Below, piece by piece: positions 1 through 48,789 of a stretch of DNA of 64,000 bases (position 1 is the first letter of the stretch; the number at the start of each line of letters is the position of its first letter). The position numbers and the translations under genes are program-made. This DNA comes from Piromyces finnis finn (lineage: Eukaryota > Fungi > Neocallimastigomycota): contig MCFH01000023.1 of assembly GCA_002104945.1 (NCBI GenBank), positions 248,001 through 312,000 on the forward strand. The letters run 5' to 3'. The notes under the pieces were generated by a model. The model was not told the DNA's origin, ran no database searches, and saw nothing but the letters and a program-made list of their open reading frames with translations.

Positions 1-2324
1 TTTAATTCTTTTTTTAGTAGACGATAATGATATAATATTTCCAGAAAACCCGAATCTTTATTTATGATTATATTTTTATACCAATCTTTTCCAATATCAA
101 TTTTTGATTCTTCATTTACCATAATATTTAATAATTGATTATTTGATAATGGTGTTTTATGTGTTGATAAAGTAAGTAAATTTAATATAAAAGTATTATC
201 AAAAACATTATATTTAAAAATAGTAAATAATAGATCATATTTTCTGTTTTTAATAAGAATGTCTAGGAATTCCGATGATATAGTTATATTATTCTTTATT
301 AATAATTTTAAAGCTTTCTTGTTTAATAACCTTTCTTCATAAAGTTTGACAATTATTTCTTTTTCATGAATTTTAAAATTTATATTTGCTCCATTTTTTA
401 AAAATAGACTAGCTATATTATATCTCTTATTGGCAATGGCACAATATAATGGTGATTTATATTTTCGAGAATCCTTGGAATCCACAACAACATAGTCTAA
501 AGATAAATAATGACTCATTAAAAATGAAATAGTATTGAAAGAAATATCTTTTTCAATTGTATATATTAATAAATCAAATAGCTTATTATTAAAATATGAT
601 AAAATAATATTATATTTAATAATATATTTTTTTAATTCTAGAATGTCTTCTGTTTCGATTAATTTTATTATAGTTTTAAATCTACCCTCACTATTATTTA
701 GATTGTCTATGAAAAAACTGTCTAATGGAATTAAATCCATTTTTTTAATATTTTGTATAAATGATTTCTTTCTTTCATTACAATATATGTATTTATCTTT
801 ATCTAATAATTGAAAAATATCTTTAAATATTTGTTCTTTATTCCTATTATCATTGATATATAAAAATGTGATTGCTTCGAAATTATTGCTCTCAAGAGCT
901 TTTTCATACATTAAATCATTAATATTAATTTTTGTTTTTTCTTCATACAGAATTCTATGTAATTGTTTACTTGATAATGTTGTATGATTTTTATATATAG
1001 ATAGTAGTTTCAATATAAACAAATTATTATATATATACTTTTCAAAAATACATTTTAACAAATCCAATTTATTATCAACAATTAATTGATTAATGGTATT
1101 AGGCAAAATTTGAAATTGACAATTTAATATATATTTCAATTTTTTATTATCTAATATTCTATCTTCATAAAGCCATGTTAATATATCTATCTTATTTATA
1201 TTTAAACCAATTTTTATTAAGAAATCAAAAAATTTAAATTTGTTCTTTGATAAAACTAAGTAAAAAAGGGTTGTATCGTCTTTATAATTTTTATCTGAAG
1301 AGAAATCTAAATTTTCATAATGACAAGTTTTATAAATAAAATTTAGCATTTCAATTGAATAACTACTTTTTATTGTAAATTTCAGTATATCATCTTTTTG
1401 GTTAAAATCTTCTCGATAATCAGCGAGTTTAATATTATTTTCTTTTATATATGATTTTAAATGGTAGACATTATTATTTTTAATTAATTGACTTATTTTA
1501 TATTTTATTTCTTGCTTTGTTTTATTACTTTCTAATATATTTATTAATTTTTCTTTTGTTGAAATTTTGAATGGGCTATTTTTTATCTTATTTAAAAAAG
1601 GTCCTTTTAATTTATTATTTTGATTTAATATTGAAATGATATTCTTTGCAATTACATTTGTTTCTCTAGTATCGTACAAATATAATAGCATTATTGTCTC
1701 AATACAATTATTCATTATTGCTACTTCGTACATAGTTTTATTAAATTTTATTTTTTCTTTTTCCTTTTTAGTCATGTCAAATAATTCGGTATAAGATAAT
1801 TTTGTTTTATTCTTTTGAAACGATAGTAATGAAAGAATGAAACTATTATCATAGATATAATTATTAAAAATTTGATTTAAGAATACATGATTATTTATTT
1901 TAATTAATTCCATTAATAATTCTGAATTAATATTAAGACCATTTCTTATTAAATATTGAGTACCTCTTTTTGTTTTCTTTAATATTATATTACCATATGA
2001 TAATGAATTAACTTCTGTTCCATTTTCTATTATATATTTAGCTATTTCAAAATTATGCTTTTCAATTGAAATAGAAAGAAAGGTACTGTTTAAAAGATTA
2101 TATTTTCCATGAATATTAATAAATTCAAATATTTCAGGTGAAACTTTATTTTCAATACACTGTTTTAAGTTAGTATAACCATTATAACCATTAAATTCTT
2201 CTTTCAAATCTTGTAAATTGATGTTATTGTTCTTAATGTAATTTTTTAATTTATCAAGGTTATTTTCATTAATAATCTTAAATAAATTTATCATAATTAA
2301 GGTTTTATCTTTTGTAAAAGACAT
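1..2324 (-). CDS. Ankyrin-like repeat protein of a gut-fungal expanded family (3' end runs off the window)
   Basis: ATG at 2324 (MSFTKDKTLIMINLF...). The frame was open at every point I translated, down to base 1; it is absent from the ORF track, probably because no stop lies in the window. Ankyrin-like segments: LSISIEKHNFEIAKYIIENGTEVN and KSPLYCAIANKRYNIASLFLKNGANINF. It also carries a repeated unit YDNSFILSLLSFQKNKTKLS / FDNTFILNLLTLSTHKTPLS shared with 31172..34894. Confidence 0.8.
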   Translation of the reverse strand, partial: MSFTKDKTLIMINLFKIINENNLDKLKNYIKNNNINLQDLKEEFNGYNGYTNLKQCIENKVSPEIFEFINIHGKYNLLNSTFLSISIEKHNFEIAKYIIENGTEVNSLSYGNIILKKTKRGTQYLIRNGLNINSELLMELIKINNHVFLNQIFNNYIYDNSFILSLLSFQKNKTKLSYTELFDMTKKEKEKIKFNKTMYEVAIMNNCIETIMLLYLYDTRETNVIAKNIISILNQNNKLKGPFLNKIKNSPFKISTKEKLINILESNKTKQEIKYKISQLIKNNNVYHLKSYIKENNIKLADYREDFNQKDDILKFTIKSSYSIEMLNFIYKTCHYENLDFSSDKNYKDDTTLFYLVLSKNKFKFFDFLIKIGLNINKIDILTWLYEDRILDNKKLKYILNCQFQILPNTINQLIVDNKLDLLKCIFEKYIYNNLFILKLLSIYKNHTTLSSKQLHRILYEEKTKININDLMYEKALESNNFEAITFLYINDNRNKEQIFKDIFQLLDKDKYIYCNERKKSFIQNIKKMDLIPLDSFFIDNLNNSEGRFKTIIKLIETEDILELKKYIIKYNIILSYFNNKLFDLLIYTIEKDISFNTISFLMSHYLSLDYVVVDSKDSRKYKSPLYCAIANKRYNIASLFLKNGANINFKIHEKEIIVKLYEERLLNKKALKLLIKNNITISSEFLDILIKNRKYDLLFTIFKYNVFDNTFILNLLTLSTHKTPLSNNQLLNIMVNEESKIDIGKDWYKNIIINKDSGFLEILYHYRLLKKEL

Positions 2325-2800
2325 TTTGCTTTATTACTTTCCCTTTACAAAATATTAGAATCTATCGAATTTTATTTAGCATATTAATGACGATAATTTA
2401 TTTTTGTTATTAAATTATGAATCTACATAAATTTATATTATAAAGTGTATTGAACAAAATTTTATGATAAATTTAAATATATTAATTGGGAAAATAAAAT
2501 TTATATTCAAAACAAATATATATAGTTAAAAAAAAAAAAAAAAAACTTTGAATTTTACATGAATATAATATATTTAATAAATAGTATACATATAAATATT
2601 CATCTTTTTAATACATTACTCTTGAGATTAATAATTTATATGATATTATTATAAAAGTATTAATAATCTTTTGATAATGAAAGATATTAATTTATTATGA
2701 TTTTATAGTTTAGATTTTTCAAAAATTAATTAAATTTTATCAAATAAAATACAAAATATAATTAAGTCAATGTATTATAAGAGGTATTCGGAGGAAAATT

Positions 2801-5800
2801 TTAATTTATATTATTTTCTCTTCCTTCTTGATATATATAAAGATTGACTCCAATAATTATATTATTTCTGTTTTTTAAATTTTCACTTCTGGTAAAATAT
2901 TTAATTCCAAATCTTTCATTATATTTGTCGAAACATAACATCTCATTTAATTTTATTTCTATTATATATATAAAAAAATTAATATGTATTATTGTTCATT
3001 TTAATTTTTTATATGGATATAGTAATTACCTCTCGGTTCAATATTTAAATTTCGAATTGAAAATACTCCTCTCGCGTGTACAGTCTCATTAGAATTCATT
3101 TTTCTCAAATAAACAGAAACATAATTGATGTATTTATTATCACTCTCTTTTATCTCAATTCTCCTATTGATTTTTAATTATCATTATTAAATAATATTAG
3201 AATATTCCTTATAATTAATATATAAACCACTATTCCTATAATATATTATGCAAAATAAAAATATTTTCATTATCATCAATTACCATATATTATTAAACAT
3301 TTTTATAGGAGGACAATAATACAACTTCTCTGGAACTACTTTACTCCATTTTTCAATATTCCACTCCATATAACCATTGTATATAAGCTCATAATTTGAA
3401 TACTCATTAGTTAAGGTATTAATCAAACTATTTGAATAATCTATATTTATATTTAAATCTATATAATTATATATTTAATAATTTATAAATATTTGTTTAT
3501 GTATTCATATATATTATGATAACTATATATTGTAAAAATATTACCTTTAGGAGTATTTAATATTTCATTATATAATATATTCTTATCTAATGGTTTTAGT
3601 ATTGATTGATCTTTTTATTGTTAAAAATTAGAATAATAATATTATTATTAAATAAGAAATATATAATTTAATTAAATACCTTTCTCATTTATTTTGTGGG
3701 ATTGAATATAAATGCCAATTATTAACGGTTCCGTTTTTAATTTATCAAAATCAATATTTTGACTAAATTTGAAAACTTCCTTGTTATTAATTGTTTTGGA
3801 TAAACCTATTATTATTATTAATAATATTTTTTATATTTTTAAAATATTTAATTTATCAGCATTAATAACAATATAAAATAAATTAATAAATTAATATTTA
3901 CATTTTATTTCATCAAGTAAAAAGTAGCTAGAAGTAATACTAGAGAACGCAATATTAACAAAGGTATTATAATCATTTTTAATTAAAACTAAATCAAATG
4001 TAAAAGTGTGATTGTTTTTCCTTTCTACATTTATTTTCCTATTTAAAATAAAATAAAGGATTATATTTTTAATAAAAAAAATAATAACGACTAATTTATA
4101 TTATTTAAAAAGTTATATATTAAAAATTTAGATAGATTACCATAAAAAATTATTATTCATAAAATTAGGACTAGATCCTTTTCCTTTATCTTTCAACCTT
4201 TCTACATTTTTAATTTTCCATTCTCTATATTCTTCATATTCTTGAACATTAGTTGAATAATCATTTTGACTTTTAAGTTTTTCTTTCAGCTTATACTTAT
4301 GTTGTTCTTTGAAATTACAATAAAAAATTTTTATTAATAATTATAGTGATAAATTATAATTCTAAATTAAAATTAATAATTATATATAAATTAAAATTCT
4401 AAATTTTATAATTATATTTAATTTACCTTCTAATAATGCAGTAAATGAAGAAGATGAAATACTTATATATTTCTTTAAATTATTTATTATACTTTTATTT
4501 TGATATTTTTCTGCATAATTTAAAAAGGAATAATCATATTTATTTTCTTTAAATATATCTGCTTCATGTTCAATTAAAATATTTGCTGCTTTTTCATTTC
4601 CTGTTTTACAAGCAACAATTAAAGGTGTATCACCTTTTTCATCCTCTATATTTATATCAGCTCCTCTGTCTATTAAATATTTTGCCATTTTTTCATTTTT
4701 ATTCCCATATAATGAAATTAAAGGTGAATTACCATTTTTATTAAATTTATTTATATCCGCTCCATTATCAATTAATGTTTTCATTATACTTTCATTATTT
4801 TTATTACAGGCTATGGTCAAAGGTGTTTCACCATCCATATTTTCTTTATTTATATCAATTTTATTTTCATCTCTAGATAATGTGTCTACTAAATATCTCA
4901 CGATGTTCTCATTTCCAACTCTACAAGCTACAATTAGAGGTGTATTACCTTTTTCATTTTCTTCATTTACATTGGCTCCTTTTTCAATTAAATATTTAAC
5001 AAGATTTTCATCTGGTGAACGTAATGAACCAGAAGAAATAGGATCACATGCTGAAATTAATAATGTATTTCCTTTTCCGTTCTTTTTATTTATATTTGCT
5101 CCTTTTTCAATTAAATAATATAATATTTCATCTTTTCTATATTTAAATGAAGTGAATAGAGGTGAATTTCCATTTTTATCTTTTTTATTTATATTGACTC
5201 CATTTTCTATTAAATATTTAACAATATTCATACATCCACGTTCTGTAGCTATAATTAAAGGTGTATCTTTAAATTTATTTCGTTTATTTAAATCTGCTCC
5301 ATTATCAATTAATAATTTAGCTATGAATTCATTTTTCTTTTTACATGAAATAATTAAAGGTGTGTCACCAAATTCATCAGTTTTATTTATATTTGCTTCA
5401 TTATCAATTAAATATTTAACTATACTTTGGTTTTCATTTCGACATGCAACAGCCAGAGGTGTATCACCTTTTTTATTTTCTTTATTTATATTAGCGCCAT
5501 TATCAATTAAATATTTAACCATAACTTCATTATCATTTTTACAAGAGATTAATAAAGGTGAATCACCATTAATATTAACCTTATTTATATGCGCTCCATT
5601 ATCAATTAATATTTTTACTATATTTTCATAATTTTTATTACATGCTATTATCAAAGGTGTTTCACCATCCATATTTTCTTTATTTATATCAATTTTATTT
5701 TCATCTCTAGATAATGTGTCTATTAAATATCTCACGATGTTCTCATTTCCAATTCTACAAGCTGTAATTAGAGGTGTATTACCTTTTTCATTTTCTTCAT

Positions 5801-12567: not shown

Positions 12568-14254
12568 ATGAAATTACTCAATATAATCCCATTTATTTTT
12601 ACACTTGGCTTTTCATATGCTAGTTGTCGTTAGTATTAATACCAAGTATTATAAAATTATAAAAAATAAAAAGGTAATACAATAAATGTATTAATATTAA
12701 TAATAATTTTTTTTTAAATTTTAGCAACTAATTTATATAGTTGTGGTGAGTCTTGCTATAGCCCAGATGAATATATATGCGACAATGGATTTTTATGGTA
12801 AATCATTAAAATTTTAAATAACATAAAGTTTTTATAACTATATTAATTTTTAAAAAATTGTCATTACATAAAATATGAATATAAAATACAGTCCTATTGG
12901 TATGAAAAATTGTTATGGAGCATGTTATGATCCAATTCAATATCAATGTCAAAATCAACAATTAGTTCAAAATGATCAAGAAATTCCTCAAATTCCAGAT
13001 ATGTCAACTATACCGGAAATACCTATTATTCCTGTAGTTTCAAATACACCAGAAACTCCAGTAACTTCGAAAATATCAGCAATTCCTACATCACCAGTTA
13101 CTTTAGAAAATTCATTACCAAAGATAGATTCCTCAATACCTAAAAAGGAAGGTAAAATGATTATACAATTAAATAATAATTCTGGTGGCGCTTGGGGAGA
13201 TGACGAAATTTATTGGATTATTATTGGAAGAAATGAAAATCATGAAATTAGTTATCTTGATTTAGATGGAAATTTAGTTAAAGCGGATGCATCTCTTAAT
13301 GATGCAACAACACCAATAGGAAATAGAAGATATGCTTCTTCTATCATTCATAAATTATCTGATCGAAACTTTGTATATCTCCCTGCTGTTGAATCCGGAA
13401 GAATGTATATTAGTTATGGAGAGCCTGTCTATATTACTTTCAATGATGGTGGTTACGCTGGACCTGATATTAATAATGAAACCGATCCAAATGGTAAAAC
13501 ATTATTTGAATATTTCGAATTTACTACTGAATATATAAATGGAGCCATTGTTTTCCATGGAAATACTACTCGTGTTGATTTCTTTAGTATTCCATATGTC
13601 ATTAGACTTATAAATTCAAGCGGTGACTATGACCGATGTGAAGGTGATTTTGGTTCTAGAGATGATATTTTCAATGCTTATATAAATTCTGTATCTGAAC
13701 CATTTAAAACATTAGTCGATAATTTAAGAATTATTGCACCATGTAAGACTAGTTTTAGAGAAGGTAATAAATATGCTGATTATTTTGATGACTCCATAGA
13801 AATCTTTTGGAATAAATATTCTCAACAAGAACTTAAATTCCAAATTCAAGGTAATAATTTTATAGGTCATGTTGAAGGAAATAAAATGATTTTTACAAAG
13901 TCGGGTTCCAATGGAATATATATTGTAGACAGACCAACAACTCAAGATGTATTAGAAGGAAGAGGCGCACTTAATAGAGCTAGTTCAAATAATCCAGAAC
14001 AAACTTCAGTTGAATTAGCAATTGAAGCTCAATTATGTGCCGCTTTCAATAGAGGTGTAGCTACAGAACCTGAAAATTGGAATAATGTTTTATCCTACTA
14101 TAAAACTAATATACATAATGAATATGCGTCATTTTTCCATAAACATTCTGTTAGTGGAAAAGCCTATGGATTTTGTTATGATGATGTTAATGACCAATCA
14201 ACATTATTAGAATGTGGTAATGCAGATACATTAATTATTGATCTTAGATGGTAA
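12568..14254 (+). CDS. Secreted beta-1,3-glucanase: signal peptide + two CBM52-like Cys modules + P/T linker + GH64 catalytic domain (exons 12568-12628, 12725-12797, 12892-14254)
   Basis: Signal peptide MKLLNIIPFIFTLGFSYA. CBM52-like modules CGESCYSPDEYICDNGFLC and CYGACYDPIQYQC. GH64-type motifs SGRMYISYG, FEYFEFT, GNTTRVDFF, CAAFNR and YASFFHKHSVSGKAYGFCYDDV. Intron phases are consistent. Confidence 0.8.
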
Positions 14255-17529: not shown

Positions 17530-18849
17530 ATGATAAATATAATAAACAGTAAAGCGGATCCATCAAAGGTAGATGGATTGGTAAAGGATTTTGTAGGATC
17601 TTTAATATGTAACCAATATTTTGTATGGACGTGCTTTGTCCTTTTTTTAAATTATAAAAGATGGAAAAGACCTGTAATCATAATATTAGTATTACACTGG
17701 TTATTCAGAAGTATTGGTGATATTTTCTTGAATTATCAAGATTTTATGGAAAAAAAATATCCAAATTGGCCATGGAATAATGATACATGGTTTTATTGCT
17801 TTGGTATTGCCAGTATATTTTGGTATTTGAGTGAAATATTTGGAGATTGGTATCCATTATTAAGAACTACAGCAATCATCAGAAATCCTAAAAAAATAAG
17901 AATTGTGTATATTATTTGTGGTATTTATAATATGGTAAAATTAGTACAAATGTACTTTTATATAACCTACGTTCCATATACTAATCCAGATATATATCCT
18001 GATACAGAAGAAGGAAAAAATTTATTTAACAAGTTATATAATAAAGATTTAGGGAGATTTAAATCACTTACATGGGGAAATGTAGTAATTCAATTAATTG
18101 TTAGTTTCTTTTATGATTTATCAATTATTATAATTTTAAGAAAAAACCTTTTCAATAAATTAAATGAAAGAAAGAATAACTTAAAAGAGAATGAAAATAA
18201 ATTTTTAAGTAGATTTAAATTTATTTCAGAATATCGTATTGTTGTATCCTTAATAGCTACTGTGGTGTCATTTCCACTTATTGCTACTTTTTCATTTATT
18301 ATGGTACATCAATTTCGCACAAAGGATGAATTTGATATTGATGACTCACGTGCAGATGCTTTTCGTCAATGCGTATTAAGTATTAATTACAATTTAATGT
18401 ACGTTGATCAAATTTTATTAAGATTCTTTGTTGATGAAAGCACTAAATTAAAATCTAAGCCAAAGTTAAGCATTGGCACTTCAGGTAATTCAGGATATAC
18501 TTCTAGTAGTTATGCATATAATAGCTATTCTTTAAATAATATTTCTAGTCACACCTACAACAACTCACATTCAATATATAAGTCATCTAATGATACTTCA
18601 AATAAAGAAAATCTGTATAAGGAATTTTCTAATGCTGATAAAATTTTAATTAAATCAAATACAAATAATTCAGATGAAATTCCAATAATAAGCTATTCAA
18701 ATAAAGATATGTCATATCTATCTAGTGTAACAGAATCACATAATAAAGCATCAATATCAAATATAAGTCCAATAGACAAATATTATCCACTTTCATCATC
18801 AAATTATTTTAATATGAATAATAAAAATTATTATAATCACAATTATTAA
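17530..18849 (+). CDS. Seven-transmembrane (GPCR-like topology) protein with a Ser/Asn-rich C-tail
   Basis: 439-aa ORF with about 7 hydrophobic segments and the motif FWYLSEIFGDWYPLLRT. Paralog of 27533..29079. Confidence 0.75.
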   Translation: MINIINSKADPSKVDGLVKDFVGSLICNQYFVWTCFVLFLNYKRWKRPVIIILVLHWLFRSIGDIFLNYQDFMEKKYPNWPWNNDTWFYCFGIASIFWYLSEIFGDWYPLLRTTAIIRNPKKIRIVYIICGIYNMVKLVQMYFYITYVPYTNPDIYPDTEEGKNLFNKLYNKDLGRFKSLTWGNVVIQLIVSFFYDLSIIIILRKNLFNKLNERKNNLKENENKFLSRFKFISEYRIVVSLIATVVSFPLIATFSFIMVHQFRTKDEFDIDDSRADAFRQCVLSINYNLMYVDQILLRFFVDESTKLKSKPKLSIGTSGNSGYTSSSYAYNSYSLNNISSHTYNNSHSIYKSSNDTSNKENLYKEFSNADKILIKSNTNNSDEIPIISYSNKDMSYLSSVTESHNKASISNISPIDKYYPLSSSNYFNMNNKNYYNHNY

Positions 18850-20614: not shown

Positions 20615-21166
20615 ATGCCAAACAAAAAATCTGAAAATAAACCAACTGGATCTGCTGCTGCTTCTAATCCAACACAACAAACTCAACAAACTCAACAAGC
20701 TCCACAAGGTCATCCAGGTCCACATTTCCCACCACCAGGACCTCAAATTCCACCACCATTCCCAATGGGTCCTCCACCACCAATGGGTCCACCACCAATG
20801 GGTCCTCCAATGCCTCATGCATACCCACCTATTGATCGTACTGATGATGATAATAATTATTATGTTTACGCTGATGTACCAGGTATGACTAAGGATCAAG
20901 TTAAAGTTGAAATCAAGGATAATATGTTAATTCTTTCAGGTGAAAGAAAATCTGATCACCTTATCAAAAATAAAAAGAATCAAGGTGATAATAAAAAAGA
21001 TAATAACGATCCAGTATTAAAATTATTCCCAATTATTGAATGTTTTTATGGTTCATTCCAGAGACCAATTCCAATTCCAGCTGATGGTGACATTAATACA
21101 TTCAAAACTAAACTTGAGAATGGTGTTTTAGAAATTATTGTTAAAAAAACTGAACAAAAGAAATAA
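20615..21166 (+). CDS. Small heat-shock protein (HSP20/alpha-crystallin domain) with a Gln/Pro-rich N-terminus
   Basis: YYVYADVPGMTKDQVKVEIKDNMLILSGERK ... YGSFQRPIPIP ... KLENGVLEIIVKK is a typical alpha-crystallin core. Confidence 0.9.
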   Translation: MPNKKSENKPTGSAAASNPTQQTQQTQQAPQGHPGPHFPPPGPQIPPPFPMGPPPPMGPPPMGPPMPHAYPPIDRTDDDNNYYVYADVPGMTKDQVKVEIKDNMLILSGERKSDHLIKNKKNQGDNKKDNNDPVLKLFPIIECFYGSFQRPIPIPADGDINTFKTKLENGVLEIIVKKTEQKK

Positions 21167-21805: not shown

Positions 21806-23423
21806 CTACATTTTAACATAAAATGGATTCTCTAAAAGTTTATCTTTAACGATGACTCTTGCGCCGCAAAGAGCACAATTAGGATCTGAATTATATATTT
21901 TGCAGGCATCATAAGCATCTTGAGCAAAACTGGTATTAACGGCAGCATAGAATAATTCTGCTTCACCAAGACAAGTAAGATAATCTGTTAGATATTGCCA
22001 CCATTTATCATAAATTTGACACAAGTTCTTCATATTATTTAGGAATCTATTATCACAAGTGGACTTTCCAACTTGGCATTCATAACAAAGATCATGACTA
22101 TTACAAACAGGTACAAATAATCCATAGTCATCAGAATTGTAGAAATCTTGTAATAATGGTATAGAACAACCATTAACTGTGACAATGCCGGTTTCAGCAG
22201 AACCATTGTCTTGTTTATATTGTGGAATACCATTCTTATAATTATTTGTGACTAATGAAATTTTACCTTGAGATGATGGATCACAATGATCTAAATCCCT
22301 TTTTAATTTTAATATCTTATTTTTATTTATAGCTGCATCGTTTTCATTTATTTCTTTAATCATATAACATTTACTTTATTTTTAAATTAAAAAGTTTGGG
22401 GGAAAACAATTAGAATAAGTAATCTTTTACATAAAATGGATAATATTTATATTTAAATTTCAAAAATGTATTTCGGGTTAAGGATTAAGAATAAAATTTA
22501 ATTTACCTTTTACAGGTATTTAATAAAAATTCATCATCAATAGTAGTAGCTTCGTTATGACTTTTCAAGTATTTGTTGTATGTCTTTAAATTGAAATTAT
22601 TAGTTTTGTTGTTTGAAAGGGAAATAAATTTTTCATTAGCTTTATCACACATTTGTATACATTTTTTGAGAGATAGTTTATGATCAACAGAATATTTAAA
22701 GGTGTCGGAATAATAAGAAATAGCTTTATTACCGTAAGTATAAAATTGTTTAGCTTGTTTTTTGGTCATATTTAAATGTTCCATAATATCATTAATTGTT
22801 TCTGTTTCAAATCCATTCCCATTACTATTTTCTATAGTATTATTGGCATTTTGAACTTTTATGTTTTTTAGTTTTTGATTTACATTTGCATCAAAGGAGG
22901 TGATATCTTTATGACAGATACCATATTTAGGATTACAACCAACACCACAATGTTTTGTGGATAAACCGCAAATACCCTCTTTACTACAACATTCACCATA
23001 GGGACATGATCCTTTACCATGACCACAAATACCATTTTTTGTAATATTAATGCTTCCTTTTATACATATGCTTGTATCCGGTTTAAGATGTTTACAGTCA
23101 ATATCTAAAAGATACACATTAATTATTGTAAAATTGGTATGTAAAAAAAAAAAAAAAAAAATCAATATAGTTTATTATTTTTAATCATTATTGTGAAAAA
23201 ATTATAATAATTAATAATTAATAATATATTGTATATATTATTATAAATTGTACTAACCTGGATTTAAGGTTCTTAAACGATAAAGAGAAACACCATTTTT
23301 AAGAGATACATCAAGACAAATATTACCTTTTTGTGTTGAATAATATTCCTTACATTTTATTTCGTAGGCTTTTGTTACTGTTAAAAGAGTTGTAAATGTC
23401 AAAAAAATATTTTTAATTTTCAT
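21806..23423 (-). CDS. Secreted precursor: signal peptide + LysM + CBM18 (chitin-binding) + Cys-containing prodomain + KR + group IX/XII-like phospholipase A2 (exons 23423-23258, 23104-22507, 22373-21806)
   Basis: Signal peptide MKIKNIFLTFTTLLTVTKA. LysM CKEYYSTQKGNICLDVSLKNGVSLYRLRTLNP|DIDCKHLKPDTSICI. CBM18 NGICGHGKGSCPYGECCSKEGICGLSTKHCGVGCNPKYGIC. PLA2 motif NGCS...FVPVCNSHDLCYEC..KSTCDNRFLNNMKNLC...C...A..FYAAV. Confidence 0.8.
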
Positions 23424-27532: not shown

Positions 27533-29079
27533 ATGTATTCTCAAAAAAGTTTTATTGAAGATAGAACACATGCTTCATATTTTGACTGGTTATTTAGTAA
27601 GGGAACAAATTATACTTGTTACCTTGAATATGAAAATATTCTTAAAAATAATCATGAACAAGAATTAAATAATATAATTGATATTGTTCGTACTATTATT
27701 TATGCATTATCCCAACCTTTTCAATTTACCTTTTTCTACTGGACCCTTTTAATCTTTTTAATGCATAAATTTAATTTTAAAAAGCCAATTATGAAGATTC
27801 TTTTAGCTCATTACTTATTACGGTAAGTGTTAAAGTTCTTTTATAAAATGTAAAATTATCAACATAATACTAATTAATATATATTCAATTTAATAGTTGT
27901 ACAGGTCATATTATAGATAATTTTGGAGGATTAATGAATCATTATTATTCAAATGAACCAGTTTACGATTCAAAGGGAAATATCATTAGCTATAAATGTA
28001 GATATGATTCTTCTTCCACTGAAATGCATCCATTAAAATGGCTTTTAACAAGACAAATTTGTACTATTTTTTGGTTTTCTGGTGAAATTATTGCAGATTG
28101 GTATCCATTACTTAGAACAAAGGCTGTCATTCAAAAGCAAAAGTCAATCAGATACGTTTATGCTTCTTGTGGATTTTTCAATTTATCAAAAATTTCATTA
28201 ATGGTTTATCACTTTATGTTAAGTCCAACCGAATTATATGATAAAAACGGTGCTTATGATAAGGAAAGAGTTAGTAACTTTTATAATACCTATTGGATTA
28301 TTCAATTAATTATTATATATGCCTCAGTTATTTACGATTTCACTGTATTTATGGTTTTAAAAAATAATGTTTTCAAAATAAATAAATCAGAATTTGGATT
28401 TATGAAAAAATTTAGAAATATATCAGAATTCAGAATTCTCGTTTCAGCCATTATAAGTGCAGTTTTCTTACCTATTGTTTCCTTTACTATTATTATGAAA
28501 TTTTATTGTAATCATAAATATAATTATTATAATTTAGATTTTTCATTTGATGCTATAAGACAATTAATTGCCAATGGACAATATTTTATGATATTTATTG
28601 ATCAAATATTATTATTAAGATCAAGTGAAGAAACTTCACGCGAAAGAAGTACAACAAAATCAAGTCATTTAGGAAACAATAGATCAAACTTTATGAGATC
28701 TATAAATAATGATAAAACTTACTACAGTATAACTGATTTCAATAATACAAACAATATTTTTGATTCTATATCAAGAAAAAAGACTGAAAAACAAAGTTTA
28801 AGTAAGTTTTCCCCAAGTAATACAACCTCTATTGATAGTCCAACTATTGCTATTGACTACAATTCACCAGTTGATAATAATTTATTAGCTTTAAGTCCTA
28901 AAGCTAATACTAGTCCAATTGTAGTTGGCTCATTAGGTGGATTTTCAAATGTTTATAACAAATTTAATGAAAATTCAAATATTCCTAGCAATAATAATAA
29001 TAACATAATTAATTACAATACTAGTTCAAATGTCTCAAATATAAACACAAATTACAATAGCAATGGATGGTATTATTAA
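27533..29079 (+). CDS. Seven-transmembrane (GPCR-like topology) protein, paralog of 17530..18849 (exons 27533-27822, 27897-29079)
   Basis: An intron gtaagt...taatag (27823-27896) joins the two ORFs in frame (..AHYLLR|CTGHIIDNF..). Motifs FWFSGEIIADWYPLLRT and FIDQILL; Ser/Asn-rich tail. Confidence 0.8.
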
Positions 29080-45113: not shown

Positions 45114-46286
45114 TTACTTTTTAATGTAAAATGAGTAATTTACTAAGTAATTATGAACAATTGAATTACCACAGAAGGCGCATTTGGTACTACTATTAAA
45201 GTTTTTACCGCATTTTTTGTAACTTCCACCAGCAAATAAATCAACAGCCTTATACATTATATTAGCTTTAGCAACGCATTCAGTATGTAAAACCTTATCA
45301 GCTTTTTAAAATATTTAAATTAGTAATTATATTTTTTTGTTTGAGTTTAACTAAAATATATAAAATATATATTGAATATTACAAACAAAAAATTAATTAT
45401 AACTATATATGGATGCATAAAAAAAATAAATATACCTATTTTTTTAGTATCATATTTAGCATTACATAAACTTTTTAAATTTGCCAAGAATTTTTTATCA
45501 CAATTACTTTTACCCATTTGACAATCATAACAAACATCATGACTGTTACAAGCTGGAAGGAATAATCCAGTATAGGATTGTCCAATACTGAAATTATCAG
45601 TTATCTTTGGTCCACAACCATTAACTTCAACTATAGCTGTTTTTACAGATTTTGGATCTTGTTGATATCTTGGAACATTATATTGGTAATTGCTTTCAAT
45701 AAGATTAATTTTTCCTTTTGATACAGCATCACAAGTAGCAGTAGCTCTCTTTTCCTTGCTTACAGTATTTACTAATTCACTAGTAGGACTTTCATTTTCT
45801 TGGCTATTTTCAATTTCTACTACTTCTGGAATATTATTGCAATTACTACATAAATAAAATATACAAAAGTCAGTATTATTATTTTATTTTCTTAATATAT
45901 ATATAAATATGTATACATTACTTTTTGCACATTTCATCTAAATCTTTTAAATTTATTTGCTCGCCAATAATACTAATGATATCTTCACTATTTTTTAATT
46001 TCATGAAATAATCGATTTTTGAGTTTGCTAAAGTACATAACCATTTACATTGATTAACATTAATTTTGTTATTACCTGATGAGGTTAAAGAATTTTCAAA
46101 GTAATTATTTCCTTCAACAATAAAGTCATAAATTTCTCCTGCTTGGCATTCTGAAATATTTAACTCAACTGCAATATCCTTAATTGTATTATTAATAACT
46201 TCATCATCATATTTGCTTTTACATACAGCGGCATTAGCAATACCACAGACACTTAATAAAGTTAATGCAATATTATAAAAACGCAT
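45114..46286 (-). CDS. Secreted pre-pro phospholipase A2 (group IX/XII-like), paralog of 21806..23423 lacking LysM/CBM18 (exons 46286-45922, 45845-45436, 45301-45114)
   Basis: Signal peptide MRFYNIALTLLSVCGIANA. After KEKR: CDAVSKGKINL...NGCGP...FLPACNSHDVCYDCQMGKSNCDKKFLANLKSLC...ECVAKANIMYKAV...CAFCG...SFYIKK*. Splice phases are consistent; exons 2 and 3 are not in the ORF track. Confidence 0.82.
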
Positions 46287-48789
46287 TTTTTTAATCAATT
46301 ATTACTCTTTTTAATAAATTGTGAATTAATATTTTAAAAATTATAAAATATTTGTTTATATAGTGAAGATTTTTCTTTTAAAGAAAACTTAGGAAGTAAT
46401 TATTTAAAGTTTTGAAAAGAATATATAACGAAAAAAAAAAAAAAGGTTAATATTTATATAAATTTTGTTTCAAATAAAAAGTATTGAGAGTACAAAATAT
46501 TGATAAAAATAAAGTATGTTAAATAATATTATTTTTTAAATTCTATCTATTTATCTTTATTTAAATATTTATTTTCTATATATTTATATATATATATAGA
46601 AAATAGTTAAAAATTCTACTTTTATGCTATTTTTCATTGAGATAGTATTATTTTTTATACTTACTATAATAAATTTTCTTTAATATTTTTATTTTACTTA
46701 TTTTTACTTTTTTTTATTTAGTCTATTTTATCATTATGATGCTTTTTCTTTTTATTTATACTTTAGAATATACTTCGAAACATTTAAACTATTGTGTTAT
46801 TTTTATATTTAATAAAGTTTCTAAGAAATTATATCAAATTTATTATTGTTTTATGACTGTTTTATGTTAATAGCTAATTTAAATAATATAATAAAACTAT
46901 AAATGTATACATTATATTATTGATTTTCCCCACTTCAAAAATTAATATTATTAGCTTTGCTACACCCATTTTTTGTATAAGCTAATTTTACCATAAAATT
47001 ATTAATATATAAATATTCCTTCAACTCTTCGGGAGACAGAAAATTGTTTGCTTATTTCTAAAAGCAGAAGGAAATATATTAAATAATAAAAATTTTATTT
47101 GAGAATTTTCCCAAAATTAATTAAATTTGAAAAAACACAAAGTTAATTTAATGTAAAAGTTAAAAATAAAAACTCTTAATATTCAATGGCAGATTAATAT
47201 AGAAGATAGGAAATAACTTTAATAACTTAATTATTTTCTTTAATTTTTTTAATTCATCAATAAAACTTATATATTGATTTTAATTCTCTATTAATTTCAT
47301 TTATTTCTGATTAATAATTATTATCAACCTTTGTAGAATGAATAATTGGAGTAATATATAATATTATACCTCCGGATTTAATAAATATATTGAATATTAT
47401 TTTTTTTTGTAATTGTTATTGTTAAAATGATAAAATAAAGGGAAAATGAAAATTCTATTACCAAGAAAAATATTATAATAAAAATTAATATTAATTCTCC
47501 AACTCTTATGAAATATGGTTAATATATATGAAAATTTGTGGATACAAAATACTATAGTTTATAATGATAATATAAATAAGATTGTTGAATAGATAAAGAC
47601 ATTTCAAGTGTATATAAAAATGAAAAAAATATTATAGTTTTCTTCTATATATTTTAATTAAAATGGTATTGTATAGAAATAGGTTGTATTGTCATCTTGA
47701 GTGTTAAGAATATAATTATAATAATTATAATTTTATTTTTTTTATTAAATATGATTAACAATTATTCATTTTTTTCATATATAATTAATATTTTAGTATA
47801 AATTATTTGAAAATTATATAGAAATAAATAAATTAAATTTTAGAAATTATAATAATAATTATAAGAAATAAAGTTTTAAATAATGGCAAAACAAATAATA
47901 ATAAATAAATGAAAAAATAAATATAATGATGTGTGGCTTATTATATCAAATTGAATATGAAATCAAAAATGTAATTAAAATGTAAAGTTAATATTATTTT
48001 TTTAATAGGAAAATTTAATACAATAATTTTAACAGGAATAATTTAAAATTTTTACATAATTATTGATATCTATATATTAATTTAATCTTTGATTATCTGT
48101 AAATATTATTGATAATAAAAAACTTTTTTTCTTTAGTTAGGTAATTTTTAAATTTCCTTAATTACAACATAATAAACATATCCATAATGATTTCAAATTA
48201 ATTAACCATATTATTATAAAGTGAAAAAATATATACAAATTAGAATGTTTAAAAGTTATGCTTAACCATCAAAATTATACTACAAAAAAAGGTAGAAATC
48301 AAAGTTATAGATTTTTATGATTGGAAAATGAAGAATTGACATTAAGCCAATCATTTTAAGGTTTTATATTGGATTTTAATATCTTTTAATTTAATTTAGA
48401 TTAAAAAAAAGTATAGACAAAAACTAAAAAAGAATGGATTTAAATCAAATTTTAAAAAAAAAATAAAATAAAAAAATAAAATAAAAAAATAAAATAAAAA
48501 AATATATTATTAATTTGAATATAATTTCCAAAAAAAAAAGGAAACAATTTACAAAAAATATAATAATAAATAAAATAATATATATTATTTTCCATAAAAA
48601 TAATTATTATTAATTATAAGAGTATAGATATATAACAGAAATAATAATAATTAAATATTAAATAAATTAATTCCAGTAAGATTAGAAAATAAGAAAAATA
48701 TTGTTATAATTTAAAATTAATAAAAGTTATAATAAATTATAAATATCAGTGACAGAAATACATTAAAAATTAATACAACAGAAAATAAA

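Follow-up and report, generated by a model that had tools for sequence, protein, structure and literature searches.

A putative secreted, wall-tethered phospholipase A2 with a folded pro-domain in the anaerobic gut fungus Piromyces finnis

Overview

We identified a single spliced gene of Piromyces finnis that encodes a modular protein ending in a phospholipase A2 (PLA2) domain. The order of domains is signal peptide, LysM, hevein-like CBM18 with eight Cys, linker, helical domain, the tetrapeptide KLKR and PLA2. We give about even chances to the reading that the product is a secreted modular pro-PLA2 that is cut by kexin, tethered to the wall by its LysM and active in defence or antagonism. The gene is located in a stretch of 64,000 nt of contig MCFH01000023.1 (the window), to which all coordinates refer.

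Anaerobic gut fungi are valued as fibre degraders, and their defence against the more numerous rumen bacteria and against predatory ciliates is almost unknown. If the proposed reading is true, lineage-specific secreted PLA2s with shuffled wall-binding or wall-lysing modules would be a concrete candidate for such a defence. The protein may also represent a new PLA2 sub-type (motifs like those of GXII on a core like that of GXIV, with a folded partner domain), of possible use in enzymology and for the modification of lipids in industry. Should the helical domain prove to regulate the lipase, this would be a new way to keep a membrane-damaging enzyme safe in secretion.

Gene structure and evidence for a single transcript

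The coding region (21806..23423, minus strand) comprises three exons that splice in frame at GT..AG introns, and yields 1332 nt from start to stop codon, or 443 aa with 27 Cys (Table 1). The translation is identical, letter for letter, to an NCBI/UniProt protein (BCR36DRAFT_327894, here P0166) that is annotated as hypothetical, and nothing more. The first-pass annotation of this DNA had proposed one spliced gene with this order of modules, and both the in-frame exons and the identity to the deposited model bear this out. The KR site and the His-Asp dyad were also found exactly where it had placed them, and the NGCS loop that it named is present. Searches excluded intron 1 positions 23211-23248 and the loci that contain them (L001, L014, L016 and L018).

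A wrong fusion of adjoining LysM/CBM18 and PLA2 genes in the gene model is highly improbable. The reading frame is preserved through both introns, and the Cx3C pair that intron 2 interrupts is conserved, and unbroken in relatives. Both splice junctions fall within blocks that align unbroken with relatives from uninterrupted ORFs. One of these (L003) is an intronless paralog of 481 aa in the same genome with the same architecture. The other, the ortholog P0016, shows this architecture on nine uninterrupted 1.4-kb contigs. Further, the share of the 31-mers of the locus in four small runs from three studies is 0.69-0.75, and the expectation for intron-free mRNA is 0.70-0.76. The share fits spliced mRNA, and is a hint of expression.

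Table 1. Positions of the gene, its exons, introns and encoded features, and of a nearby paralog, in the window.
Feature	Position	Strand	Remarks
Exon 1	23258..23423	-	signal peptide and first two thirds of LysM
Signal peptide	23364..23423 (aa 1-20)	-	within exon 1
LysM	23055..23354 (aa 24-72)	-	across intron 1; 4 Cys; sub-threshold Pfam match and fold match
Intron 1	23105..23257	-	153 nt, GT..AG, phase 1
Exon 2	22507..23104	-	end of LysM, CBM18, linker, most of the helical domain
Hevein-like CBM18	22914..23027 (aa 82-119)	-	8 of 8 Cys; binding positions Ser/Trp/Trp/Tyr read S/E/I/H
N/K-rich linker	22821..22913 (aa 120-150)	-	aa 122-150 predicted disordered, pLDDT < 50
Helical "pro" domain	22310..22820 (aa 151-276)	-	across intron 2; five predicted helices, pLDDT 92-98
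Intron 2	22374..22506	-	133 nt, GT..AG, phase 2; inside the second Cx3C pair
Exon 3	21806..22373	-	last helix of the helical domain, KLKR, PLA2 domain, stop codon
K277-L-K-R280, candidate kexin site	22298..22309 (KR, 22303-22298)	-	conservation; low-confidence segment
PLA2 domain	21809..22297 (aa 281-443, 163 aa)	-	10 conserved Cys and C412
N322-G-C-S325, putative Ca2+ loop	22163..22174	-	aligns with D-G-C-S of Tuber PLA2 (4AUP)
His348-Asp349 of C-N-S-H-D-L-C-Y	22091..22096	-	invariant; aligns with H64-D65 of S. violaceoruber PLA2
Asp362, predicted partner of the catalytic His	22052..22054	-	invariant; aligns with Asp85 of 1faz_A
Paralog P0019	45114..46298	-	320 aa; lacks LysM/CBM18, has signal peptide, helical domain, KR and PLA2

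The PLA2 domain

Membership of the C-terminal domain in the PLA2 superfamily, with an intact His/Asp/Asp set, is supported at the level of sequence comparison, as the first-pass annotation had anticipated from the His-Asp dyad. All 29 relatives have His348 and Asp349, and 28 of them have Tyr352. In the putative Ca2+ loop, G323 and C324 never vary, and N or D occupies position 322 (Asn in P0166). A search with the PLA2 exon recovered 182 representatives at E<=0.001, and the motif C-x-x-H-D-x-C-Y is present in nearly all of them (about 140 of the 150 matches examined). The family profile matches the solved PLA2s 1FAZ (1e-9) and 4AUP (2e-9), with H, D and D aligned; a search of PDB sequences with the single sequence gave no match.

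In Pfam, the domain fits PLA2G12 best (PF06951; E 2e-6 with exon 3), at 28.2 bits against a cut-off of 34, and this family was not reported when the full-length protein was scanned. Bacterial kin of the domain pass the same cut-off, with 47.6 and 67.8 bits. The AF2 model of the domain has a pLDDT of 80. Its top fold match among 48,161 chains is 4aup_B (rmsd 4.0 A, 101 residues aligned), with a Z of 7.8, a value not unusual for helical models; the next match has a Z of 5.9. Foldseek found nothing in the PDB at E<=0.001, and its best matches there were PLA2s, but weak (E 0.9).

The wall-binding modules

Pfam recognises LysM, CBM18 and PLA2, the three domains proposed at the outset, but the scores for LysM, Chitin_bind_1 and PLA2G12 are all below the curated cut-offs. 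For LysM (PF01476, CBM50), the score is 18.9 bits against a cut-off of 20.9, and the full length of the model is matched (aa 28-71). The LysM domains of the orthologs P0165, P0167 and P0170, and that of the paralog L003 (31 bits), are above it. The predicted structure of aa 24-72 superposes on 5bum_A over 49 of 49 residues (rmsd 0.9 A), which is the beta-alpha-alpha-beta fold, and on 4pxv_C over 48 residues (rmsd 1.0 A).

The eight Cys of the CBM18 (82, 89, 94, 95, 101, 108, 112 and 119) follow the hevein spacing C-x6-C-x4-CC-x5-C-x6-C-x3-C-x6-C. The Pfam score (PF00187) is 22.8-25.9 bits and the cut-off is 27.8. In hevein, the residues that stack on GlcNAc are S19, W21, W23 and Y30. The aromatic triad is gone in P0166, and these positions are non-aromatic throughout its orthogroup. 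The proposed LysM and CBM18 are thus both present, but the idea that the CBM18 binds chitin is doubtful for a module that has lost its aromatic sugar-binding residues, and the LysM may therefore be the only chitin binder. The CBM18 of one paralog (L004) has canonical binding residues (Y-G-Y...Y), and two relatives have no CBM18 at all.

The helical domain and the dibasic site

Between the linker and the PLA2 domain is a helical domain of about 125 aa with twin Cx3C pairs (C204/C208 and C253/C257). These Cys are invariant in all relatives that have the helical region. Every member of the family carries this domain, and in the P. finnis genome it was found solely beside PLA2 domains. A structure search returned generic helical bundles only, with no match to a known fold, and a search of the protein atlas gave nothing over the noise level of 0.8.

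The full-length model has a pTM of 0.78. Docking of the helical domain on the PLA2 domain was predicted with an ipSAE of 0.63, compared to 0.02 for the best control; of 78 solved complexes, 51 attain this mark, as do 2 of 108 mismatched pairs, in a calibration that does not include the present case of a eukaryotic pair cut from a single chain. In the docking run, partner pLDDT is at least 74 and runs agree in at least 1% of contacts. The predicted interface involves residues 328-332 and 377-404, and H348, D349 and D362 are not among them. Occlusion of the active site is unsupported for this reason, and we rejected the helical domain as an active-site plug. The "prodomain" of the first-pass annotation is indeed a helical region that contains Cys, but it does not look like a simple propeptide, as it is confidently folded, stapled by disulfides and predicted to stay docked.

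The KR that follows is the sole dibasic ([KR]R) site in the protein. Arg makes up 1.8% of residues, and the P1 Arg is conserved in 27 of 29 sequences. P2 is K or R in 26 of the 29. P4 is mostly Leu across the family; in P0166 it is Lys, with Leu on either side (P3 and P5). Kex2 prefers Arg at P1, Lys or Arg at P2 and Leu at P4 (PMC8528282). The site is within the sole disordered stretch near the PLA2 domain (residues 275-281, pLDDT < 50), and in the family it sits 1-8 residues upstream of the first PLA2 Cys. A kexin gene (L005, an S8 protease with P-domain) was identified in the P. finnis genome. The proposal of a dibasic processing site is strengthened by this conservation, by the flexible linker and by the encoded kexin.

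Relatives and distribution

The family comprises dozens of sequences from Piromyces, Anaeromyces, Neocallimastix and metatranscriptomes and, going by the sequences at hand, is so far confined to anaerobic fungi. Each genome holds several divergent paralogs with shuffled targeting modules. The paralog P0019 is 22 kb from the main gene, on the same strand. Another relative has four C-terminal CBM18 domains. In P0037/L102, CBM18 repeats, the helical domain, KR and PLA2 are combined with a GH25 domain (77.7 bits), and other fusions include Cys-rich repeats.

Homologous PLA2 domains also form the C-terminal ends of bacterial RHS proteins (P0058, with a PLA2G12 score of 47.6 bits, and P0075). At these RHS tips the domain is used as a toxin. 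The 78 bacterial loci are only 28-51% identical to the domain. In a FastTree tree of 241 domains and 130 columns, the known anaerobic-fungal sequences form one cluster of 50 leaves, without support.

It had been supposed that no protein with this architecture was described. In fact, public databases already list such hypothetical proteins. We found no relevant paper in literature searches for the architecture, for PLA2 in anaerobic fungi or for the locus tag.

Proposed mechanism and role

Under the reading that we favour, the signal peptide would be removed and about 13 disulfides would form. A Golgi kexin would then cleave after Arg280 in the flexible linker. The helical domain would stay non-covalently on the face of the PLA2 domain formed by its third helix, so that the enzyme would remain tied to the LysM/CBM18 module, and the helical domain may double as a folding aid or latency clamp. 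The LysM would anchor the complex on a GlcNAc polymer, most likely the chitin wall of the fungus itself, possibly peptidoglycan; the CBM18, with its degenerate binding residues, probably adds little. The Ca2+-dependent His/Asp PLA2 would hydrolyse phospholipids of membranes that touch this surface. The role that we consider most likely is defence or antagonism, directed at rumen bacteria and perhaps at ciliates or other fungi as well, because one relative carries a GH25 muramidase and the same domain caps RHS toxins.

A bolder extension, which we regard as speculative and rather doubtful, is that the twin-Cx3C domain is a new latency or chaperone domain dedicated to PLA2 that, by non-covalent contacts, clamps the lipase to interchangeable modules after kexin cleavage. 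These may be wall-binding or wall-lysing (LysM, CBM18, GH25). The products would be antibacterial lipases of two chains that dock on surfaces, and anaerobic fungi would have in this family a eukaryotic equivalent of the polymorphic toxins of bacteria.

The PLA2 domain might instead have no lipase activity and serve in binding or signalling, as in group XIIB, and both the sub-threshold Pfam scores and the Asn in place of Asp in the presumed Ca2+ loop are consistent with this. However, His348, Asp349, Asp362 and Gly323 are invariant, Tyr352 is almost so, and inactive homologs normally lose catalytic residues; we thus find a non-enzyme improbable. Some more weight, though still not much, goes to the possibility that the KR is not cut, or that cleavage is irrelevant, and that the protein works as one chain with the helical domain as an integral accessory (e.g., one that presents membrane or lipid). 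The helical domain is well folded, disulfide-stapled, universal in the family and predicted to be packed on the PLA2. Kex2-processed pro-domains described so far are usually short and disordered, with a proposed role as folding aids (PMC8528282), and two members have no dibasic site (P0038, which reads ER, and P0032). Against this, a rare Arg is fixed here together with P2 Lys and, mostly, P4 Leu, as Kex2 prefers, in a disordered loop just ahead of the first PLA2 Cys. Conservation of this kind is hard to account for without a protease.

Of the alternatives, we take most seriously, while still thinking it unlikely, a housekeeping PLA2 that is directed at the fungus itself, parked in its own chitin wall like Tuber TbSP1, and not a weapon. 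Its tasks could be remodelling of the fungus's own plasma membrane, release of fatty acids or lysolipid signals, or scavenging of lipids from plant debris, for example when the fungus starves, sheds zoospores or encysts. TbSP1 provides the nearest solved fold; it is induced by starvation and resides in the inner cell wall (PMC10512230). In anaerobic fungi, many domains unrelated to one another (LRR, CotH, deacetylase) come with a CBM18, which hints at a general anchor to the own wall. The neighbouring genes (HSP20, a GH64 glucanase and unknown membrane proteins) also fit this reading, and no gene cluster, toxin-like or other, was found around the locus. On the other hand, an outward-directed role is indicated by the fusions to GH25 muramidase and Cys-rich repeats and by the bacterial RHS toxins that employ the domain. 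Divergent paralogs with shuffled targeting modules are more typical of conflict proteins, although this is only suggestive.

Comparison with known systems

We read P0166 as a variant of the secreted microbial PLA2s that is probably wall-tethered and defensive. The group XIV PLA2s (PF09056; S. violaceoruber, 1FAZ/1KP4/1LWB, and Tuber borchii TbSP1, 4AUP) have a similar helical core, with the His, the adjacent Asp and the second Asp aligned. They are likewise secreted and lose an N-terminal sequence at maturation, as described for SvPLA2 and TbSP1 (PMC11525133). Group XIV enzymes have the motif x-R-H-D-F-G-Y, two disulfides and a Ca2+-binding Asp, whereas P0166 has C-N-x-H-D-x-C-Y (the classical/GXII spacing), five disulfides in the domain and Asn322. 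Further, the P. finnis domain exceeds theirs by about 40 residues and has a conserved tail at its C-terminus (C-x-x-C...P-F-Y), and the protein has in addition the folded helical pro-domain, the KR site and LysM/CBM18.

What P0166 shares with group XII PLA2s (PF06951), as judged from motifs, is the loop N-G-C-(G/S) and C-N-x-H-D-x-C-Y...C-D-x-x-F, which we take to be the group XII pattern. Unlike those enzymes, it is fungal, scores below the gathering cut-off (28.2 vs 34) and carries extra modules.

Tox-PLA2, described as a toxin domain of polymorphic toxins (PMC3482391), is represented by the RHS tips of P0058 and P0075. Their catalytic domain is homologous, at only ~30% identity. P0166 has no RHS repeats or filamentous delivery parts according to Pfam, and uses eukaryotic secretion instead; a carbohydrate-binding module stands where the Tox-PLA2 systems have a delivery module.

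The K2PP effectors of fungi resemble P0166 in the succession of N-terminal part, KR and Cys-rich mature domain. Their pro-domains are short and disordered, whereas the part upstream of the KR in P0166 is 260 aa long and has three folded domains. K2PP effectors are from plant pathogens, and P. finnis is a gut saprotroph. The precursor of the alpha/beta subunits of Kluyveromyces lactis zymocin is also cut by kexin, and its chitin-binding part docks the toxin on the chitin wall. The first-pass annotation likened P0166 to it, by description and not by sequence: P0166 has no GH18 chitinase (by Pfam) and no separate gamma toxin, and its predicted payload is a lipase.

Gene structure and genomic context

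We identified a single spliced gene encoding a 443-aa protein with 27 Cys (CDS 1332 nt) in the window (C146:248001-312000; G+C content 20%) of the 56.46 Mb, 232-contig assembly. The translation is identical to a deposited Piromyces finnis protein (P0166), labelled 'hypothetical protein BCR36DRAFT_327894' at NCBI and 'Chitin-binding type-1 domain-containing protein' in UniRef. The first-pass annotation had proposed one gene, and this is borne out, as both splice junctions fall in conserved blocks where relatives are uninterrupted: one inside the LysM (between LNP and D), the other between both Cys of one Cx3C pair. The same architecture occurs in uninterrupted form in a 481-aa ORF of the same genome (paralog L003) and in a 437-aa ortholog (P0016) found on nine contigs of 1.41-1.46 kb from several JGI samples. 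Four small runs, of 20-45 million letters and drawn from three studies, contained 0.69-0.75 of the 31-mers of the locus, which fits spliced mRNA and is suggestive of transcription in that form (expected share 0.70-0.76 for intron-free mRNA, ~1.0 for same-strain DNA).

Features of the PLA2 gene, its product, neighbours and P. finnis paralogs (nucleotide positions in the window; aa, residues of P0166)
Feature	Position	Strand	Description
Exons	23423-23258, 23104-22507, 22373-21806	minus	in-frame join
Introns (n=2)	between the three exons	minus	153 and 133 nt, GT..AG
Signal peptide	aa 1-20	minus	by eye: basic start, 12-residue hydrophobic core, T-K-A before Tyr21
LysM	aa 24-72	minus	Pfam 18.9 bits (cut-off 20.9), whole model length covered
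CBM18	aa 82-119	minus	complete eight-Cys hevein spacing; 22.8-25.9 bits (cut-off 27.8)
Linker, N/K-rich	aa 122-150	minus	disordered, pLDDT < 50
Helical domain	aa 151-276	minus	five helices, pLDDT 92-98
PLA2 domain	aa 281-443	minus	exon 3 match to PF06951 (PLA2G12), E 2e-6, 28.2 bits (cut-off 34)
HSP20/alpha-crystallin	20615-21166	plus	52.9 bits; Pro/Gln-rich N-terminus
GH64 beta-1,3-glucanase	12875-14254	plus	intronless 459-aa ORF, 257 bits
ORFs	17530-18849 and 27934-29079	plus	by eye, paralogous multi-pass membrane proteins
Paralog P0019 (ORX49645.1)	45114-46298	minus	320 aa; signal peptide, twin-Cx3C helical domain, E-K-R, PLA2; introns; without LysM or CBM18
Paralog L004			helical domain, KR, PLA2, four canonical CBM18 domains
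Paralog L003	C211		LysM, CBM18, helical domain, KR, PLA2

There is no evident gene cluster around the PLA2 gene, the neighbours being HSP20, GH64 and unknown membrane proteins. The HSP20 gene is convergent with it (3' ends 640 nt apart). The GH64 ORF, 8 kb away, encodes a wall-glucan-lysing enzyme with a faint N-terminal carbohydrate-binding match. The two putative membrane-protein ORFs, for which no Pfam match was found, flank the PLA2 gene. Paralog P0019 shares the strand of the PLA2 gene, at a distance of 22 kb.

PLA2 domain

An exhaustive search with the PLA2 exon recovered 182 representatives at E<=0.001, nearly all with C-x-x-H-D-x-C-Y. The family profile (A3, 44 sequences) matched solved PLA2 structures from Streptomyces violaceoruber (1FAZ, 1e-9) and Tuber borchii (TbSP1, 4AUP, 2e-9). 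Group XIV enzymes have a catalytic His/Asp dyad plus an adjacent Asp (PMC11525133); His348/Asp349 align with H64/D65 and invariant Asp362 with D85 of the solved PLA2, and these residues are thus the predicted equivalents. They are invariant in 29/29 relatives, as are Gly323 and nine Cys. Modelled with AF2 (pLDDT 80), the domain is closest, among 48,161 chains, to 4aup_B (Z 7.8, rmsd 4.0 A, 101 aligned; next row Z 5.9), and Foldseek ranked the same PLA2s first, weakly (E 0.9). The claim of a PLA2 with an intact dyad therefore stands, with activity a prediction; the positions reported for the dyad (22096-22091) and for the dibasic site (22303-22298) are both correct on the minus-strand translation.

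LysM and CBM18

In the full-length AF2 model, the LysM superposes on that of Equisetum chitinase A (5bum_A; rmsd 0.9 A, 49/49 residues, Z 6.9), and the LysM of orthologs P0165, P0167 and P0170 score above the Pfam cut-off. At the positions equivalent to the sugar-binding Ser19, Trp21, Trp23 and Tyr30 of hevein, the CBM18 has S, E, I and H. These positions are non-aromatic throughout the orthogroup of P0166; paralog L004 has the canonical Y-G-Y…Y. Because of this loss, and because two relatives (P0173 and P0038) lack CBM18 altogether, chitin binding via the CBM18 of P0166 appears doubtful. Thus, of the LysM and CBM18 proposed at first, the LysM fold and hevein Cys spacing were recovered, with sub-cut-off Pfam scores for both and the CBM18 binding aromatics lost.

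Helical domain and candidate kexin site

The region first described as Cys-containing and helical is present, and is a confidently modelled domain. C204-x3-C208 and C253-x3-C257 are invariant wherever the region occurs, and in the P. finnis genome it is found only beside PLA2 domains. Structure and protein-atlas searches matched no known fold or family. A complex test of this domain against the PLA2 domain scored 0.63 (best control 0.02), a mark reached by 51/78 solved complexes and 2/108 mismatched pairs in a calibration that lacks two-piece eukaryotic chains. In the docking runs, partner pLDDT was at least 74 and contacts agreeing between runs at least 1%. The modelling supports binding of the helical domain to the PLA2 domain. 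The predicted interface (residues 328-332 and 377-404, the third long helix) excludes the catalytic residues, so docking is suggested and plugging of the active site is unsupported.

The dibasic site reported between these domains was also found: K277-L-K-R280 is the sole [KR]R of P0166. Arg makes up 1.8% of residues over 29 family members, yet occupies the KR-site column in 27/29; the preceding column is Lys/Arg in 26/29, and P4 is mostly Leu, with the first PLA2 Cys 1-8 residues downstream. Kex2 prefers Arg at P1, Lys/Arg at P2 and an aliphatic residue at P4 (PMC8528282). The family site agrees with this, although P0166 itself has Lys at P4. Residues 275-281, the sole low-confidence segment between two well-modelled domains, coincide with the site, and at least one gene of the genome codes for a protease that combines Peptidase_S8 with a proprotein-convertase P-domain. 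Kexin cleavage after Arg280 is predicted. The docking score, together with the full-length AF2 model (pLDDT 79, pTM 0.78), suggests that the N-terminal fragment could stay attached after cleavage, tethering and perhaps restraining the lipase.

Relatives and fusions

In P. finnis the family comprises four intact members (the gene of P0166, P0019, L003 and L004) and a fragment interrupted by stops. The fragment (G000:C153:672984-673193 (+), L023; weak PLA2-domain match, E 8e-4, TGA and TAG inside) is probably a decayed member. Compared with the uninterrupted ORF at L003:1255-2700 (-), the deposited P. finnis model P0001 (BCR36DRAFT_581007, 397 aa) is missing the signal peptide and LysM at the N-terminus, and looks truncated. 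Piromyces sp. E2, Anaeromyces robustus and Neocallimastix lanati have orthologs as well. In a FastTree the known anaerobic-fungal sequences group together, without support.

In a relative on a metatranscriptome-type contig (L102, JGI sample 3300010976, 25-34% G+C), CBM18 repeats (3-4 canonical) and a long, acidic N/E/K/D low-complexity linker precede the helical domain, L-R-K-R and PLA2; three Cys-rich repeats and then a GH25 muramidase (77.7 bits, cut-off 27) come after the PLA2. L102:106-3539 was called as three same-strand genes; the ORFs at 1008-1664 and 1698-3539 share a frame with one stop between, and the three look like a single transcript. A recurring Cys-rich repeat of ~35 aa (C-x5-G-x-C-x5-C...LC-x-G-x4-CC) lies next to PLA2 and GH25 (P0036:405-477, P0037:330-405, P0067:20-145, P0029:350-440); Pfam gave only a faint thionin match, and it may be a further wall- or membrane-binding module.

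Bacteria carry the catalytic domain widely (78 loci), and it lies at the C-terminus of the bacterial RHS proteins P0058 and P0075. Cnidarian and mollusc proteins contain it too. PLA2 has been described as a polymorphic-toxin domain (PMC3482391).

Possible role and comparison with known systems

The architecture and conservation patterns of the family are direct observations. We infer that the protein would be secreted, cleaved by kexin and retained as a two-chain complex tethered to a GlcNAc polymer, with Ca2+-dependent PLA2 action on membranes adjacent to that polymer. Defence or antagonism is favoured by the fusion to GH25, by the relatives among RHS proteins and by the shuffling of targeting modules. 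A self-directed role is kept alive by TbSP1, which is starvation-induced and wall-located (PMC10512230), and by the broad use of CBM18 as an anchor in these fungi.

The PLA2 domain resembles GXII and classical PLA2s in motif spacing and its N-G-C-S loop, whereas its solved relatives are GXIV enzymes, which have two disulfides where five are conserved here. Given these mixed traits, we file it as a divergent sub-type of the PLA2 superfamily and a putative enzyme. The architecture had been thought undescribed; we found no publication on the protein or its relatives, although the sequences are already deposited as hypothetical or 'CBM18' proteins. Secreted microbial PLA2s with an N-terminal pro-part are known as a type; the new elements, in our view, are a folded partner domain with twin Cx3C pairs, a conserved candidate kexin site and interchangeable modules for wall binding or wall lysis.
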